From assembly GCA_907165135.1 (NCBI GenBank), contig OU015567.1, positions 2,170,001 to 2,234,000 on the forward strand: a stretch of DNA of 64,000 nucleotides, written 5' to 3'. The DNA comes from Oikopleura dioica (taxonomy: Eukaryota > Animalia > Chordata). Position 1 is the stretch's first letter; each line of letters opens with the position of its first letter. Below the pieces are notes generated by a model. The model made no database searches. It was not told the origin of the DNA and saw only the letters and a program-made list of their open reading frames with translations. Positions 22,896-33,161 of this stretch are shown piece after piece. Both the position numbers and the translations under genes were made by a program.

Positions 22896-22944
22896 TAACC
22901 CAAACCCAAACCCAAACCCAAACCCTGACTCAGGTTTTCTACAC
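22896..22944. repeat. (AAACCC)n tract joined to a CCTGACTCAGGTTTTCTACAC arm; dispersed short-element family
   Basis: taacccaaacccaaacccaaacccaaaccctgactcaggttttctacac; the same arm occurs at 28612-28692 and, partly, at 48838-48858. Confidence 0.7.
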
Positions 22945-24166: not shown

Positions 24167-27100
24167 ATGGACAATGTTACTGTTAGCATGCAGAATATAC
24201 ACAGTAAGTGCAAGCAATAATCTCCCCTTGAGTTCGTTATTTTTCATGAGTTTTCTGACTGAACTCATATGATTCTGTCACTCCCGGACACATTCATATG
24301 AACCACACGACTTCATCAATAATGCTCTTAATTGCAAAAGCAAGGATAAAAGCCCAACAACTTCTCCCCCTTTTTCAGAACTTCCAAGATGATCTCAGAA
24401 CAAGGGCTCTTGCCCCTTATCATGTCAAATAACACAAGAAATTTTTTTATGGAAAAGTTTTTTAAATCGGCCTTCGAGCCAAGCCGCCAGGTTCTCCGAC
24501 ATATACTGTACGGAAAACTAAACGAACTCCGCTGGCTCTTGAAAAATTACATCGCCAAAAGCTACTTTTGTAAGTTTCGGTTTTCGGAGTTTTTTTATTA
24601 TTCAGATAATGACGTAATCGGAAGTACTTTTCTGAGCCTTTGTTTTGGGCTCCTGGTTGTCGTTTTTTTAACGAGCACTGAAAAAAAAATGGAAAAAATA
24701 ATGAAAAATTAGACTTTTTTTTCAAAAAAAAAAATTTAAAAAAAGAGAAAATGAAATGACGAGCTCAGTTTTGTTCTTGACATAACGTTTTATTCAATTC
24801 AAGGATTTTCATATTTAAAATTGATATCGTCGATACAGTACAAAAAAGTACCTGTATCGTTCCTCGATATCCTCAAAAATTACTTTTGTAAATATGTGGG
24901 TAAAGTTGAATTGATTCTTACGATGGAAAAAAAATCTATAAAGCAAGAACAAATCTCAGAATTATGGTTTTCAAGAGCGATAAATTCTTCCCTTTCTCAA
25001 AATCGTGACTTCATCCCTAAAAAAGCTTTCTAGTTAATTATTTTTAGCGAGCACATGCGAGGACCCGCCGACGAAGCCAAATCCAGTTTATATCGCGAAA
25101 GCATCGATAGCCTTTTTGTTCGTTGTCCTGTCGCTTCCGATGAATATCCTGACAATCTGCGCGCTTTGGAAAAATTTTCGCAAATCTCCAAGGCAGAGAG
25201 TTACGATTCTCTCGAAGGACCACCCTAGTAGAGTGGGCGTCTCCTAGCCCACCTGCACCTTTAGCTGCAACCTTAACTCTTCTCAAAGCTACGCGTTCAT
25301 CATCAACCTCTGCCTCTCAAATATCTTCTTCGCTCTTTTTGTAAACAACCTCGATGCAGTTTGGAACCTCACAGTCCAGTGGTATGCAGGAAACATCGCC
25401 TGTAAAATCTGCCAATTTTTCAAGCAGTTTTCGCTGACCTGGAGCTCCACTGCAGTGACTTGCATTTCGCTGGACAGATGTCTTACCCTGCTTTTTCCGC
25501 TTCTTGCTGGATCAAAGTAAGGACCAAGAAAACTTGAAAAAGAATTTATTGGTTCAGTAGAAGTACGAAAAGAGCAGCTTTGATAATCATTCCGTCGCTG
25601 ATCGCGAATTTCCTGACCTGTGCTCCTGCTTTTGGTGAGTCAAAATAGACTTGAGAGGCTAAGATTAACTTCAGCTTTGTATAAACTCCACGACGGAAAA
25701 GTGTGCAACATCGAGCGATACCGTCAATGCGTCGACTTCATGGGCAATTACACGATCGAGCAGCGCAATCGATATTATTCAGCTCTGATGACACTTCAAT
25801 TCATCATTCCAGGCGCGTACTCGCTCTGATACCATCACTTTCGCTAAATTACTTTTGACGAGTCTGTCGATCAGCCGTTGTTAATACCATTTGCTCGGGA
25901 TTGTTGATATACGAAGTGGCGAAAATGATTCGCACGGAAAAAGGTACTTGTTGAAAATTTAACCTGTCGGCGCGAAAGGGCACAAAATGTGTCAGCGAAA
26001 TAATGAACAGTCTTTTGATGATAAAATTCAAATGTGTTTAACATTTTTTGAAGCAAGAACATCCATTCCAACTCGTAAGTATTCTTCCAGCTCATTTTTA
26101 ACCCTCTCTCACCCAAGCTCTCGGAATCGGAATGCGGCAAAGGTCTCTCAATGCGCTCAAACGCGCCAGGCTCAGAATGTTCTTCAGACCTCGTGCTAGC
26201 AATCTCAGTTAGTTCAGGCTCTAGATCTGTTCATACCACAAACTGAGGGGTTAAAAATTAACCCGTCTATCTCATGAGTCCCTTTTTCATCAACTAACCT
26301 CGCCATTGAATCTTGATTATTTCTCATCCTGTTTCTCAAACGAAAAAATATTTTTCGAATTTGAGAATTCCATTTTCTAACCCGTTGAAGTTAGTAGGAA
26401 ACAAACATGACCACCATTCGGTCATGAGTTAAACTTTTTTACAGGTATGATTGGACAGTCGAGAAAATCAGTTACATCAGTGGCGAAAGCGAAAAGAAAG
26501 CTAGAGAGATTAGCTGTTGTTCTCATCTTTGCTTTCTGGTATGCGATGTTAGATTTCGTTCTTTACTGTCACTATCTTCAGCTTCTGTTACGGACCATAT
26601 TATGGGCACGCGCTATTAACTGGTTGGGGCGATCCATCTACAATTTCTTCCAGCAAAGCTCTTCTAAGTAGCTTTTCCCTAAACTAACGTCCTTTCTATT
26701 ATTAATTTTAGTCTGGGTCCAGTCCTGTCTTTACCTGGTCCCATTACTGTACTCTCTCGTTTTCTGCTCAATGCTTTCCGACGTCAGAGAGGTAAAAAAA
26801 AACATCGTATCTAAATGGACTGAGTGATTTTTAGTACGCGCGAAATTTGTTCGATTTCAGTGGCAAAATAGAAGCCAGGGCGACCATGAGTAACGTAAGT
26901 TATCCTTTCTAGAGCGATTCTCTAGAACTTCGAAATTCAGACTTTTTTACTAAAAAGCTTCGATCCAGAGGTAAAACTAGAATTCGCATTTTCGCAAATT
27001 TAGATCTTTCATCTTCATTTTTTAGTATCAAACATCTCCAACAATGATCACCAGGCACTGTTCATACTCACTCTCGATTCTTGACTCTAGAACTCTAACT

Positions 27101-27441
27101 GACAATCTAAATCCTCGTTTATCAATCCCCATTATTAGAAAATCCTTGAAATTCTGCGCCTTTCAAAGCTTGAACAAAACACCAGATTCTCCAATCGCCC
27201 GAGTCCAATGCCCAGTGCTTCTGGCACTCCAAAACTACCTCTTCGCGATCTTCCATTCTCAAAGCAAGAAAGCTCCAATCTTTTGTCCACCAGCCCCTCA
27301 ATGGATTCAGAAAAGCTGATCATTCCAAAACGCGAGAATGGAAATGTCTTCACGACTCTCCAGCTAGACGAGCACGGCGACGCATTGGTGGATCAAAGTC
27401 GGCCTCGATCGCCGCGAAATTTTATCGTTGATAAATTATAA
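24167..27441 (+). CDS. Class A GPCR, GnRH-receptor-like
   Basis: TM1 IAFLFVVLSLPMNILTI; TM2-ECL1-TM3 FIINLCLSNIFFALF..DAVWNLTVQWYAGNIACKICQFFKQFSL..ISLDRC (GnRH/AKH/vasopressin receptor signature); ECL2 RQCV; TM5 LQFIIP; TM6 KAKRKLERLAVVLIFAFCYGPYY; TM7 LVPLLYS; Ser-rich tail ending at 27441. The start MDNVT at 24167 is tentative. Confidence 0.85.
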
Positions 27442-28136
27442 GATTTGTAAAGTTTACTTTCTGTGTTAATAAAAATATTTATTTCTGTACATTTTCGTTG
27501 ATTTTCCTGCGAAAAAGCTAGTGCAAATGCGAAATCGAAAGGTTTCCTGCAAAGAAAATGAGACAAGACATATTTTGTGAGAGAAATTGATTTTATTCAG
27601 GACAATGAATGAGGCGAAGGCTTAACTTTTTGAACACGGGCAGTTTCACTTTTCAGAAGTTATCTCTCTCTTCAGTAGTGGACACCATCTGAACCGCCCG
27701 CTAGAAGAACCATTCGCCCATTCTTGACATTCCCGTTTGCTAGAAATTTTTGGATTAGACTTCATTCTGCAATAATTCACCTGAATTTACCTTTTTTTAC
27801 TGCTTCTCGGACCGGAAAAATCCGTAGACTGAGAGATTCATTTGTTGAGCCCTGACAACAACAATTTATCTAGAGACTTTTTCTTGAAAATACTGAAAAC
27901 ATTGGCGCTCTCTAGAGAATTTTTTGCTATCACGCGGTTAGTGTGAAGAAGTTTCACGAATTATGGAAACTGAAATCAAACATTGATTATTATTTTGATT
28001 CAAGCAGTCTCGATTTTAGCCCGATCGGTCGGAAAATACCCAGTTCTTCCAGCAGCGTCGCGGATCTTCCAGTAGCAGAGGAGTTTTCTGATTTTCCCAC
28101 GCGCTTTTTCCTCCCTGCCAGGCGCAATAAAAAATA

Positions 28137-28560
28137 ATGAAAAAATTAGACAAGTTCATTTTTGCCCATATTTACCGGCGATATGAGGACGAAAGCGTAG
28201 AGAATCAATCGCGAATTTTATGCTTTTCCAGTTTAGCGGAAGAAATTCGAAGAGATAAACAATCGAGAGGGCTTATTTTGAAGAATTTCGACGATATTCT
28301 CGGGAAAAATACTTATTTAGTGGGAGAAAGTGTTAATTTATGCGATATTGCTCTTTTCTCCGCGTTATGAAAGGTTCAAACTGTCGATTTACCGTTATTT
28401 TTGCCCGGAAAGGGGCTTTCCAAAGCGGATTCTGGTGATTTTCGCGCTTTGAATCTTTAAAAGTCAAGGATCAAAGCCTGTTTTCTCAATATTCCAATAT
28501 TGTTCGATACATGAACAACCTTTCAACCTCTTTCTCGACCGTTTTCTGTGAAAATGAGGG
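28137..28560 (+). CDS. GST-like domain exons, probably an N-terminal extension of GlyRS (alternatively a separate AIMP3-like gene ending at 28564)
   Basis: LKNFDDILGKNTYLVGESVNLCDIALFSAL matches the GST C-terminal helix motif, followed by YSNIVRYMNNL. An in-frame TGA (28368-28370) requires a non-canonical intron ~28369-28463. Confidence 0.65.
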
Positions 28561-28611
28561 GTAAAAAGTGTGGCTTACAAGATTTCTTATCCGACTAACA
28601 CAAATGCTCTT

Positions 28612-28692
28612 GTGTAGAAAACCTGAGTCAGGTCCTATAAAGCGATTTTGCAAAACCTAATCATTTTAAACCCTCTCTCAGGTTTTCTACAC
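28612..28692. mobile_element. Tiny inverted-repeat element in the GST-GlyRS intron/spacer
   Basis: GTGTAGAAAACCTGAG (28612-28627) ... CTCAGGTTTTCTACAC (28677-28692), perfect 16-bp inverted repeat. Confidence 0.6.
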
Positions 28693-28759
28693 GGGTTGCC
28701 CTCTTCACTTTGTTTCTGTTTCCATTTTTAAATTTCAAGATTTGATGGTTCGTTTCAGA

Positions 28760-31700
28760 ATGGAAGATATTGACTCGATCCTCGAGCCTCTCCGCCTTTC
28801 GGTAAAAGAACAAGGTGATATCGTCCGAGAACTGAAGGCGCAAAAAGCTCCTGAGCTCGACATCAAAACTGCCGTCGCCGAACTCAAGAAGCGAAAGAAG
28901 GCGCTGCAAGACAAGGAAAATGAACTGGTCGCCGCAGAAGCTCCTTTCGATCGAGTACAATTCGAAGCATGTTTGAAGAAGCGATTTTTCTTCGGCCAAG
29001 CGTTCGAGATCTACGGCGGCGTGGCGGGCTTGTTCGACTACGGACCGGTCGGATGCATGCTGAAAAACAACGTGATCGATCTTTGGAGAAGACATTTCAT
29101 CACGAACGATGACATGTTAGAAGTAGAGTGCACGATGATGACTCCATCAAAAGTGCTGGAAGCGTCGGGACATGCGCAGAGATTTGCAGATTTGATGGTC
29201 AAAGATTTGACGAATGGAGATTGCTTCAGGAACGGATGAATTCTGATTATCACAAACAACTGTAAATGTGAGTTATGGTCATGAAATGCTTTAATAAAAG
29301 CTGCGTAGTGGCAGTCCTAGCCTAGGAATCAAGCCGCTAAAGTTGAGCGGCTAAACGGCTTTACCTAAGTCACCATCTCAGTCTTTCTATCCTTCGAAAA
29401 GAGCTGACCACCTCCTGGAAGCCGCGATCGAAAAAGCCTTGACAGACAAAACAACTTCGGAAGAACTAAAAGCCGACATGCGGGCCACTTCTCCCCTCAT
29501 CGAAGGTTTTTCAAAAGAAGAACTGGGCGCCAAACTGAGCCAGTACAAAGTAAAGTCTCCTTCCAGTGGCGGCGACATTTCCGAACCGATGGAATTCAAC
29601 TTGATGTTTCGCAGCGAAATCGGCCCGACCGGGGCGCAACCAGCTTTTCTTCGCCCAGAAACGGCGCAAGGCATCTTTTTGAATTTCAAACGCTTACTGG
29701 ATTTCAACAACGGAAAGTTGCCTTTTGCTGGAGCGCAGATTGGGCATTCTTTCAGAAACGAAATCGCTCCTCGAGCAGGTAAATAAAATGAATACGCAGA
29801 ATAAATTAGCTGCTTTCAGGTCTGATCCGCTGCCGAGAATTCCAAATGGCCGAGATCGAGCACTTCTACGACCCAGCAGATGCTTCTCACTCCAGCCTCG
29901 AAAGCGTCAAAGAACTAATCCTTCCTTTCTTCACGAAAGATGCGCAAATGGGTGGTGGAAAATTGACCAAATGTTCGATCGGCGAAGCGCTGAAGAATGG
30001 AGTTCTTTGCAACGAAACTTTGGCTTATTTTATCGGTAGAATTTTCTTGTTTGCGAAGGCAATCGGCATTGATCCTGCTAGAATGCGATTCAGGCAGGGT
30101 CATGAAAAATTGGTGGAAGCGTGGTGGATTAGCGCTTCTCGCACCTCGCGCTCCACTGCGCCTCGGGGGAGTGAAAGTAAATTCCACCGCGGGCCGGTGG
30201 AAAATCTTCTACCATCCACCGGTGGATCTACCAAGGCCGGTGGATTTTGAAAATTTTTATTTTTTTTTATAAATTTATCGTCCCGAGGATACTTTTTCGG
30301 GGACTAAGAATGATTTATATTATTCTCAAAGGATTATTCTTAGGTATTATATCGGAAATTGCATGAGTACTCACTCTGTATGAAGTAAACCGTATACTTA
30401 GAGTTTTTTCGGGAACAGCGAAGTTTCCTAATTAAAATAAAATTTTATTCATAAAATAATTTTTCCAGCCGATTCCAACGATACCAAAATCTTTTTGATA
30501 GCATGATTTTATGGAAGGCAGGCTTAAGAATTCACATAAAGTGAAGTGATTTTTCACCCAAGTGTTCAAGGGCACCTGCTAATTCTCTTCTCGAAATAAC
30601 TCAACATGAACCTACTACTTCCGGGAACCTTTTCGTGTTAATCACCCGGTGTTATTTGCATCTGATTCTGAGTACAGGGTCACAGTAAGCACCCACCGAG
30701 ATTATGGCGCGCGCTAATGCTTTTGGGCTCCCGCGCGGCGCGTAAAGCACTTCCACTCTCTTATCTGACGACTGTGTGCGACAGGAAGAACCAGGAAAAT
30801 TTTTGGGGGCAGTAAGAAAAGTATCTGATAAACAACATATCGAAAAATTAATGACATGCAAGACGTGCTCTATATGATTTGCCTCTTTGAAAAATAAATT
30901 TTGAGTTTTCATTAATTATTGAACATTTTCTGCCTAATCTTTTTCAATATTTGGAATCCCGGTGTTATTTTTGATAGATTCCCTACGGTGATATGCGGTC
31001 AATAGGAGATTTATCTCCCAGTTCGTATTTTGGCGAAATAGGAGATTTATCTCCCAGTTCGAACTTTTGTGAAATAGGAGATTATTTTCTCCCAGTTCAA
31101 TTTTGACAAAAACTGCGGTAAATGGGAGATTTTTTGAACAATTTTTTAGTGATTAATAGTTTATTATAATCCTGTTAATTCAATAAATTCATGAATAAGC
31201 ACCTTGCAGGATAAGATTAAATTGGAACTTGGAGAAAAAGAAGAAGACAACAGTCACGGAATGTCACGAATGTCACAAATGTCACGGAAACAGAGGTAAA
31301 TGATTAAGATTTGAGATTGGTCGAAAGTAAAATTTGAATAATTCGATCAAAAGAAACATCTTTTGACCCTCTAAAACGAAACTGACTAATAATAAGCATT
31401 GTATCTTCATGGCGTTGCAAGGATGCTTTGGAAACTTTTCTTGCTTTCGATTTAAAATTATTTTGAAAATCAAATTGCTGATACCAGAATTCGTCCCGAA
31501 GGACAAAAATTCGGTCAATTGCGCGTGTTTTTCGACTCTCCTCAAGAGCAGTTTTAAATTTTTGATTTGCGCGCTCGATTGCGTTGGATGTTTTATCACA
31601 CCAGAGAGTCGTTGATTGAAGAACATTCCACCAGCAAAGGAAATTTGAATCTTTTTCGAAACGCGAAAGAAAAGTTTAAGTGTGGTGATCTAACGGTGGG

Positions 31701-33161
31701 TTCCTGCTAAGCGCAGGAATGAACTACCCGAGTTGAAAGTGACATTCTCCCACCAGGCCCGGTGGATTTTGCTTGCCTTCCACCATGGCGCAGTGGAGCG
31801 CGAGGCGCGAGAAGCGTTAATCCACCACGCTTCCACCAATTTTTCATGACCCTGGATTCAGGTATGCCTGTTGCAAAACGAACATATAAAAATGCGCTTC
31901 AGACAGCACATGGACAATGAAATGGCCCACTACGCAAAAGACTGCTGGGATCTCGAATGCCGAACCTCCTACGGCTGGGTAGAGTGCGTCGGTTGCGCCG
32001 ACCGCTCCTGCTTCGATCTCCAATGCCACGCCGAAGCTTCCAAAGTCAATTTGCAAGCAGAGCGCACTCTTCCTCAACCAATCGAAAAAGAAGTCTTTGA
32101 AGCGATTCCGGTAAAGAAGTTCATCGCCAAGCAGTTCAAAAAAGACACTCCCGCGGTGACAGAAGCGATTGTTTCAGCCGACGCCGCCGATTTAGAAAAA
32201 CAATTCGAAAACAGCGAAAAAATCACACTCGCTGGCTTCGAAATCAGCAAAGAAATGATCCAGTTGAAAAAGAGCGTCAAGAAATTCCACACAGAGTCGT
32301 TTACCCCGTTCGTGATTGAGCCCAGTTTCGGAATCGGAAGATTAATCTACGCCTGCTTGGAACATAACTACGATTGCAGAGAAAAAGATGCGGAGAGGAG
32401 GTTTTCACGATTCCACCGCTCGTTGCGCCCTACAAATGCTCCGTCTTGCCGCTTTCGAATAAACCCGAGTTTGATCCGTTCATCAACACTATTTCTTCCG
32501 GTCTAAAGGTTAGTTTAAACTACCCCAATTTTATCCCTGTTTGTCAACTAAGACCAAAAATAACGTTTTGATTTAGTTTCATTTTAGTCCAATTATTCTC
32601 TTTCAGCTACAAAAGAGCTCCTCTCCCCATTTCAGACCACTTGTACCTCTCCCTAATGTATCAGACAAAAGCTTTTCCTGATTTTCTTCATTTTAGAGCC
32701 TGTCAGTAGCCCACAAAGTCGACAAATCATCTGGATCAATTGGAAAACGATACGCTAGAACAGATGAAATCGCAGTTCCATTCGGGTAAGTTCCGTTACT
32801 TCGCTGACTTTTCAGAAAACTCCTGGACTAGAATGTTCCATGTTCGAATCATGCTTTTTGCAGACAAAAGTGTATTTTGCAAGAGAAGCAAAAGCTACTT
32901 ACTCGTGAAAAGCGCATGATAAAAGCATGGAAAATAAAGTAACAAATTTTTTTCAGCGTCACCGTCGATTTCCACACCGTGAAAATTACGCCAGCTACGG
33001 TGACCCTTCGAGATCGAGACACGCTCGATCAAATTCGAGTGCCAGTTCAAGACACAGCGAATTTGATCAATGAGATGGCCAGCCAGCGGCAGTCCTGGGC
33101 ACAAGTTGCGGCAAGATACCCTTCCCAAGACGACTGGCTCAAGGAAAATCCTCTAGAATAA
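28760..33161 (+). CDS. GARS: Glycyl-tRNA synthetase (WHEP + class II core + anticodon-binding domain), interrupted by a hAT element and carrying a 1-nt frameshift at ~32400
   Basis: [26 protein letters not shown]; GLFDYGPVG; CFR|ADHLL; [22 protein letters not shown]; FRNEIAPR; MAEIEHF; RFRQHM..EMAHYA.DCWD; [11 protein letters not shown]; [11 protein letters not shown]; [11 protein letters not shown]; [13 protein letters not shown]; [13 protein letters not shown]. Confidence 0.95.
30095..31854. mobile_element. Non-autonomous hAT-type DNA transposon, 1760 bp
   Basis: About 68-bp near-perfect TIRs starting CAGGGTCATGAAAAATTGGTGGAAG; 8-bp TSD GATTCAGG at 30087-30094 and 31855-31862; CCACC/GGTGG subterminal repeats; no transposase ORF recognised. 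Confidence 0.93.
31001..31105. repeat. Three ~36-bp tandem repeats inside the hAT element
   Basis: AATAGGAGATTTATCTCCCAGTTCG.. three times, each with an internal GGAGAT/ATCTCC palindrome; a (GTCACGAAT)-like x4 tract is at ~31252-31290. Confidence 0.85.

Follow-up and report, generated by a model that had tools for sequence, protein, structure and literature searches.

GST-like domains hold together the animal multisynthetase complex (MSC) and the ValRS-eEF1 complex, and the GST-C-only domains of eEF1B-beta/delta and Arc1p serve purely for protein-protein assembly. Glycyl-tRNA synthetase (GlyRS) has, to our knowledge, always been counted among the free synthetases. GST-like appendages are described on MetRS, EPRS, ValRS, CysRS, AIMP2, and AIMP3 in work on the human complex (PMC7470956). 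Here we analyze a 64,000-nucleotide stretch of Oikopleura dioica DNA (contig OU015567.1, positions 2,170,001 to 2,234,000 of the forward strand; hereafter the window), in which a short, probably GST-C-like coding module lies immediately 5' of a GlyRS gene and ends at a splice-donor-like boundary in phase with the first GlyRS coding exon. Like the MetRS, EPRS, ValRS, CysRS, AIMP2, and AIMP3 domains, the module appears to be GST-C-type and helical, and it lies on the N-terminal side of the synthetase beside a WHEP domain, an arrangement also found in EPRS and MetRS. Unlike the GST-bearing synthetases, its host is GlyRS, the GST-N half is absent, and attachment would be by an optional splice, not a fixed fusion. 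The short, apparently all-helical build with no GST-N half resembles the N-terminal GST-C-only domain of eEF1B-beta/delta and the N-terminal domain of Arc1p, from which the module differs in its host protein and in showing no significant sequence match. The locus resembles a synthetase with an appended GST-like domain, the covalent link being a conserved possibility only.

The second system for comparison is the spliced-leader (SL) operon. Trans-splicing affects approximately 39% of O. dioica genes, and operons are common, with a median intercistronic distance of 31 bp among the operons predicted in one RNA-seq survey (PMC7986045). The 40-nt SL (ACTCATCCCATTTTTGAGTCCGATTTCGATTGTCTAACAG) ends in ...AACAG (PMC6883708). 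As summarized in two later papers (Ganot 2004; Denoeud 2010, via PMC7986045 and PMC11067885), O. dioica SL operons consist of same-strand neighbors with an AG just before the downstream ATG, and housekeeping and translation genes are typical members; the module-GlyRS pair shares these features. It departs from the operons so summarized in its spacer, which measures 119-962 nt across lineages against ≤60 nt, and in a conserved 5' splice site, in phase with GlyRS, at the end of the upstream open reading frame (ORF). The 198-nt gap of the window exceeds the 60 bp of the Denoeud definition, as relayed in PMC7986045, and lies within the 500 bp used by Plessy et al. (PMC11067885). The name O. dioica covers several cryptic species, between which operon neighborhoods are reportedly poorly kept while exons of one gene rarely separate (PMC11067885); module and GlyRS have stayed adjacent over much deeper divergence than O. 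dioica operons are reported to.

A third comparison is offered by yeast GRS1 and human GARS1, the dual cytosolic/mitochondrial GlyRS genes, in which one gene gives long and short N-terminal forms, as proposed here. GRS1 and GARS1 use a presequence and alternative initiation, whereas here a GST-like module with an acidic N-terminus would be joined by splicing. Other GlyRS representatives also carry N-terminal extensions before WHEP; among the nine such extensions searched, none gave a GST match, one is an SGT1 fusion, and the others are presequence-like. A mitochondrial presequence reading of the module is ruled out by its acidic N-termini.

We propose that the module and GlyRS form one conserved transcription unit with two outputs, a cis-spliced GST-WHEP-GlyRS mRNA and a trans-spliced GlyRS-only mRNA, a reading in which our confidence is evenly balanced. 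The pre-mRNA would start upstream of the module, and the donor at 28560/28561 would be cis-spliced to 28759, producing a GST-like-WHEP-GlyRS protein with the junction ...CENEG-MEDIDS.... With the donor unused or absent, the same acceptor would take the SL and GlyRS alone would be made from Met1, while unspliced or early-terminated RNA might yield a free 110-aa module that ends at a stop TAA one codon past the donor. By analogy with MetRS, EPRS, AIMP2, AIMP3, ValRS, and eEF1B, the module may link part of the GlyRS pool to a second protein with a GST domain, within either a synthetase complex or eEF1. The in-frame splice is a conserved and apparently selected possibility that probably coexists with trans-splicing. 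That larvaceans choose between cis- and trans-splicing at one acceptor, leaving GlyRS free or tethered to a GST-domain partner (MSC or eEF1), is a more tentative extension, held at a little under even confidence.

Direct reading and translation of the window agree with a first-pass annotation of the same letters on all of its coordinates: the module starts with an ATG at 28137 and its coding stretch ends at 28560/28561, a TAA follows at 28562-28564, the acceptor falls at 28758/28759, and GlyRS starts with the ATG at 28760. Its claim of an in-frame join, GGA ATG GAA GAT, through a GT-AG intron is likewise borne out at the level of the sequence. The 198-nt segment between the two ORFs (28561-28758, + strand) begins with the donor GTAAAA and ends with the acceptor tttcag, and can be read as a candidate intron or as an intercistronic spacer; if it stays unspliced, the TAA ends the module. 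Taken alone, the phase match in the window is not beyond chance, being a one-in-three event, and the argument is carried by related loci.

Homologous loci were collected from marine-metagenome contigs (ENA, JGI) with GlyRS exon 1 and the GST exon as queries. They fall into clade A, the group of the window (GlyRS protein 91-96% identical; L008, L011/L012/L013, L042, and L046), and clade B (GlyRS protein 79-83% identical; L001-L005, L006/L007, and L009/L010), with three further lineages (L082, L084, and L085) represented by short contigs only. The module is the immediate 5' neighbor of GlyRS, on the same strand, in the window, L008, L011/L012, L042, L001-L005, L006/L007, and L009, that is, in 7/7 recovered lineages whose contigs reach far enough upstream, the window included. 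A check for the module in other larvaceans, which the first-pass annotation had called for, thus finds it directly 5' of GlyRS in six other lineages. Synonymous differences are saturated for almost all lineage pairs (pS, the proportion of synonymous differences, 0.55-0.9), and even the nearest relative differs from the window at ~70% of synonymous sites; the lineages are therefore nearly independent at neutral sites. The module ORF is open in six lineages, and within each clade its ratio of nonsynonymous to synonymous substitution (dN/dS) is 0.08-0.24, at dS of at least 1, with 0.01-0.08 for GlyRS. By these comparisons, the predicted module is real coding sequence under purifying selection.

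The end of the module is conserved as a donor. Its terminus reads ...GG|GT in 5/5 lineages in which both module and GlyRS are intact: GAGGG|GTAAAA in the window (spacer 198 nt), AAAGG|GTATTT in L008 (358 nt), TATGG|GTGAGC in L001 (119 nt), GGAGG|GTGAGA in L006 (962 nt), and TCTGG|GTGAGT in L009 (849 nt). Three of the five donors have the full consensus GTGAG and are stronger than the module's internal donors in the same genomes (GTTAAA and GTTTTT). All five modules close with a Gly codon that has G in its third position, and GGG makes up just 8% of the Gly codons in GlyRS; as a background, the third base is the same in all five for 1 of 40 conserved fourfold-degenerate codons of GlyRS exon 1. 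In L008 the donor is GTAT, so that the frame reads GGG TAT... and continues unspliced for 20 codons with no stop; conservation thus attaches to the GT and not to a stop codon. A phase-2 GTRAG donor automatically reads as an in-frame TRA stop, and for this reason an ORF ending in a G followed by a stop is the expected look of such an internal exon end. Judged across the relatives, conservation of GG|GT is more than chance would give.

The acceptor side is conserved as well and resembles a site for SL addition. The arrangement AG|A ATG, with an invariant Met, precedes GlyRS in 8/8 lineages examined, and because GlyRS always starts in this way, joining GG to A gives Gly followed by Met, an in-frame junction conserved in 5/5 lineages. 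The Met, one base after the acceptor, is not needed for a purely internal junction, which argues that GlyRS is also made alone. Given an SL that ends in ...AACAG and a one-base spacer, a trans-spliced mRNA would carry an A at -3 relative to the ATG. The spacers themselves have lengths that are not multiples of three, cannot be aligned between clades, and contain insertions, including a MITE-like one (miniature inverted-repeat transposable element). At 119-962 nt, they exceed the 60-bp cut-off used in O. dioica operon prediction, which favors cis-splicing. Neither the window spacer (28561-28758, which contains TATAAA only) nor the 119-nt L001 spacer contains AATAAA or ATTAAA, although variant signals are possible; on canonical signals, the upstream 3'-end formation signal of an SL operon is absent.

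The donor is lost only in lineages in which the module or GlyRS has decayed. L042 (JGI Ga0115008_10030179) has a dead module at 380-860: ATA replaces the ATG, an internal segment is deleted, and the donor is gone. The L042 GlyRS is intact over four exons. The donor is also absent from L011, L012, and L013. Two of these contigs reach into GlyRS (L011:1895-3702 and L013:104-2032); there, a TGA occupies the place of a conserved Gly codon, frameshifts break the reading frame, WHEP has lost 5 nt, and the conserved SGH motif has become SGY. L011 and L013 do not have the same set of defects although the contigs are 98% identical, and this GlyRS looks like a young pseudogene copy. We set these three contigs aside as a counter-example to donor conservation on account of the in-frame stop, the frameshifts, and SGH to SGY. 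The GST-like ORF of L011/L012 is still open, with a new C-terminal tail and no donor. In L082, L084, and L085, no GST-like ORF end occurs in the 328-497 nt upstream of the called GlyRS ORF, on contigs that are short.

A conserved noncoding block, ATCTTCCAGTAGCAGAGGAG (28064-28083, + strand), lies about 55-75 nt 5' of the module ATG and may act as a promoter or other 5' element for the transcription unit that module and GlyRS would share. It aligns as TCTTCCAG(C/T)AGC(G/A)GAGGA in the window, L011/L012, and L042, among which neutral sites are saturated. L042 keeps the block despite its dead module, which fits a promoter that also serves GlyRS.

The module itself consists of two exons and not, as first described, of one GST-like exon spanning 28137-28560. 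The ORF from 28137 runs into a TGA at 28368-28370, and the last 32 module codons sit in another frame. Exon 1 (28137-28368, + strand) comprises 77 codons and the first base of a split codon and has orthologous exons in L008 and L011. It is followed by a noncanonical GA-AG intron (28369-28463, + strand; TTAT|GAAAGGTTCA ... AAAAG|TC), which excises the in-frame TGA, and by exon 2 (28464-28560, + strand), which closes in phase 2 with ...GAG GG; once spliced, the module encodes 110 aa. The exon 2 protein is conserved with L008 and L011 and, over an FxNIxxW/Y helix, with clade B (L001, L006, and L009). The GA-AG donor motif also occurs in L008, L011, and L042, and the join is in frame in the three lineages with an open module, with unequal intron lengths and Phe, Tyr, and Tyr as junction codons. 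Introns of the GA-AG type are common in O. dioica (PMC7072748). As an alternative, read-through of the TGA with a canonical AAAG|GTTCAA donor was considered and rejected: its frame breaks in L011, whereas T|GA...AG fits 3/3 lineages. An intron interrupts the module in every lineage; that of clade B is different (GT-AG, at another position), and the product there is 122 aa.

Several comparisons point to a GST-C-like module, an assignment that we consider probable, with fairly high confidence. The signature YLVGxxxxLCDIxLF...NIxRY/W resembles the alpha4-alpha6 region of GST_C, and there are weak matches to AIMP2, EF1-gamma, and eEF1E1-type clusters. Pfam GST_C scores 20.8 bits on the window exon against a gathering cut-off of 20.7, Arc1p_N_like gives sub-threshold matches in the window and L008, and L001, L006, L008, and L011 match GST_C, GST_C_2, GST_C_3, and Arc1p_N_like at sub-threshold levels only. 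Almost all matches in a PDB-sequence profile search are GSTs, the AIMP2 GST domain, or EF1-gamma, with E values of 0.1-1.5 that are not significant, and nearly all align at one region, YLxGxxxxLxDIxLF. Language-model features place the module with the GST_C and eEF1E1 (AIMP3) clusters (0.85-0.87), which are leads only. An AlphaFold2 (AF2) model of the 77-aa exon piece is poor (pLDDT 58), and Foldseek with this model of the 77-aa piece returned no structural match. The module does not form a complete GST fold, having no thioredoxin-like GST-N half within its 110 aa (122 aa in clade B). Clade B has no space for such a half because the module ATG lies 90-170 nt past a sulfatase stop and right behind an acceptor-like AG.

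The main competitor of the dual-output unit is a plain two-gene operon or tandem pair, in which an AIMP3/eEF1E1-like standalone gene would be polyadenylated in the spacer and GlyRS made solely by SL trans-splicing at 28759, the GT that overlaps the stop being never used or giving only trace, functionless read-through chimeras. This account, possible and yet doubtful in our judgment, draws support from AG|A ATG and Met1, kept in eight lineages, with a like arrangement at the module start in clade B; from an intact GlyRS with no module in L042; from the L011/L012 module ORF, intact with another tail and no donor; from the very different rates at which module and GlyRS evolve; and from the frequency of trans-splicing and operons and the 500-bp definition cited above. 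It leaves unexplained the identical third Gly base and the T that follows in 5/5 intact lineages despite saturation, the GT of L008 with no stop, the clade-B GTGAG, and the loss of the donor in precisely those two lineages in which module or GlyRS has decayed; spacers beyond the 60-bp cut-off, and without a canonical poly(A) signal in the window and L001, also speak against it. A nematode acceptor undergoes cis-splicing instead when its pre-mRNA carries a functional 5' splice site farther upstream. The first-pass annotation had itself offered another reading, in which an AIMP3-like cistron is separate and GARS receives the SL at 28759. With the acceptor and Met kept in eight lineages and the L042 GlyRS intact, that reading probably also holds in part.

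A functional donor with a different partner, either an alternative 3' exon in the spacer or a 5'-splice-site-like operon-processing signal, is unlikely. Conservation of GG|GT constrains the site and not its partner, the L006 and L009 spacers (849-962 nt) are roomy enough for more exons, and C. elegans has intercistronic Ur elements with 5'-splice-site-like sequences, all of which would suit such a donor. The spacers, however, show neither a conserved ORF nor a conserved acceptor, contain MITE insertions, and cannot be aligned from one clade to the other; the L001 spacer is just 119 nt long, and five lineages would have retained the phase match with GlyRS by coincidence. Slightly less likely again is an obligate single gene with GST-like-WHEP-GlyRS as its sole product and the ATG at 28760 as an internal methionine codon. 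Conservation of donor, phase, and adjacency agrees with it, but a Met one base after the acceptor, unneeded in an internal position, would not be expected to be invariant in eight lineages, and in L042 GlyRS has stayed intact even though the module in front of it is dead, its ATG and donor lost; the three lineages with no GST-like ORF end upstream, on short contigs, point the same way. Least probable of all, to the degree of being nearly negligible, is a GST-like ORF without protein function, either a relic in decay or a frame open by chance in the region 5' of GlyRS. The borderline Pfam support, the in-frame TGA unless a noncanonical intron is assumed, and the decay in L042 would suit a relic, whereas dN/dS of 0.08-0.24 at saturated dS in both clades, an ORF open in six lineages, and an intron frame kept in three contradict it.

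Several observations weigh against the dual-output unit. The donor statistics rest on approximately four effectively independent lineages, and the dN of the module is ~10x that of GlyRS. GlyRS is able to do without the module, as seen in L042 and in the conserved Met right after the acceptor. Assignment to the GST fold is of borderline significance, and the partial AF2 model is poor. No GST-GlyRS is found among 150 GlyRS cluster representatives, and a literature search yielded none, in keeping with the first-pass annotation, which knew of no GST appendage on GlyRS. Four RNA runs labeled as the same species (three oligo-dT RNA-seq and one single-cell) gave zero reads on GlyRS or the module (window 27000-32000; at least 90% likeness). 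Since GlyRS, a housekeeping gene, also received no reads, these runs evidently come from a strongly diverged, cryptic lineage; no indexed RNA run contains the window stretch. The protein collections searched contain no transcript-derived or annotated protein, fused or standalone, in a word-based search that is blind to ~800-aa fusions; a protein of that length cannot be returned for queries so short, so this silence weighs little. A homologous-protein search with GlyRS exon 1 returned genomic ORFs only, all starting at Met1, and the same search with the GST exon gave a single match (P0040), which is genomic; the clade-B alignment as query gave no matches. Protein representatives searched with GlyRS exon 1 include no full-length larvacean GlyRS.

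If the dual-output unit is real, GST-GlyRS would be a new synthetase architecture, with a GST-like domain on a new host and optionally attached. Complex membership would have been gained in a fast-evolving chordate lineage, and one 3' splice site would serve both cis-splicing and SL trans-splicing, switching the domain composition of a protein. Even if no fusion is made, a gene pair kept across otherwise scrambled genomes and a conserved, splice-donor-like end of the upstream ORF would have to be explained.

The GlyRS gene occupies 28759-33161 (+ strand), with approximately seven coding segments placed by homology and the stop codon at 33159-33161. Full-length GlyRS proteins P0088 and P0100 cover residues 5-688 over 28781-33125 by tblastn. 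The first coding exon (28759-29229, + strand) contains the A, the ATG at 28760, the WHEP domain (WHEP-TRS, Pfam E 1e-12), and the first part of the class II catalytic core; its protein is 96% identical to P0001 and 79-83% identical to P0002-P0005. By these matches, the predicted product is a class II eukaryote-type GlyRS with WHEP-TRS, catalytic core, and anticodon-binding domain. Intron 1 (29230-29401, + strand; TTCAG|GAACGG ... AAAAG|A) is a phase-2 GA-AG intron placed by homology to the uninterrupted ...CFRADHLLE of clade B; it is common to the window, L008, L011, and L042 and absent from clade B. L042 has an extra intron in GlyRS exon 1 after ...RFFYGQ. Intron 3 (30087 onward) begins with GC, which agrees with an earlier note of a hAT element; the only RNA read matches fall on a 34-nt repeat (30691-30724) inside the hAT-bearing intron.

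The outer neighbors differ between the clades. In clade B (L001:1987-3658 and L006:3216-4503), a sulfatase ends 90-170 nt 5' of the module on the same strand, and the module ATG stands one base behind an acceptor-like AG (AG|N ATG); this suggests that sulfatase, GST-like module, and GlyRS form a three-gene, operon-like array. The clade-B sulfatase is absent from the window, where no SL gene, sulfatase, PSD, or CDP-alcohol phosphatidyltransferase neighbor was found. The window contains 29 AGNATGG sites, 18 of them AGAATGG, a total not above chance; AG-N-ATG is not enriched before long ORFs window-wide, which is uninformative in an intron-rich genome.

The spacer of the window contains a MITE-like hairpin (28612-28692, no strand assigned), the arms of which (28612-28627 on the + strand and 28677-28692 on the - strand) form a perfect 16-nt inverted repeat. 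A third copy of the arm sequence, GTGTAGAAAACCTGAG, lies 5.7 kb upstream at 22929-22944, with 0.05 matches expected by chance, and the hairpin is probably a member of a MITE family. Minus the hairpin, the spacer measures ~117 nt, near the 119 nt of L001.

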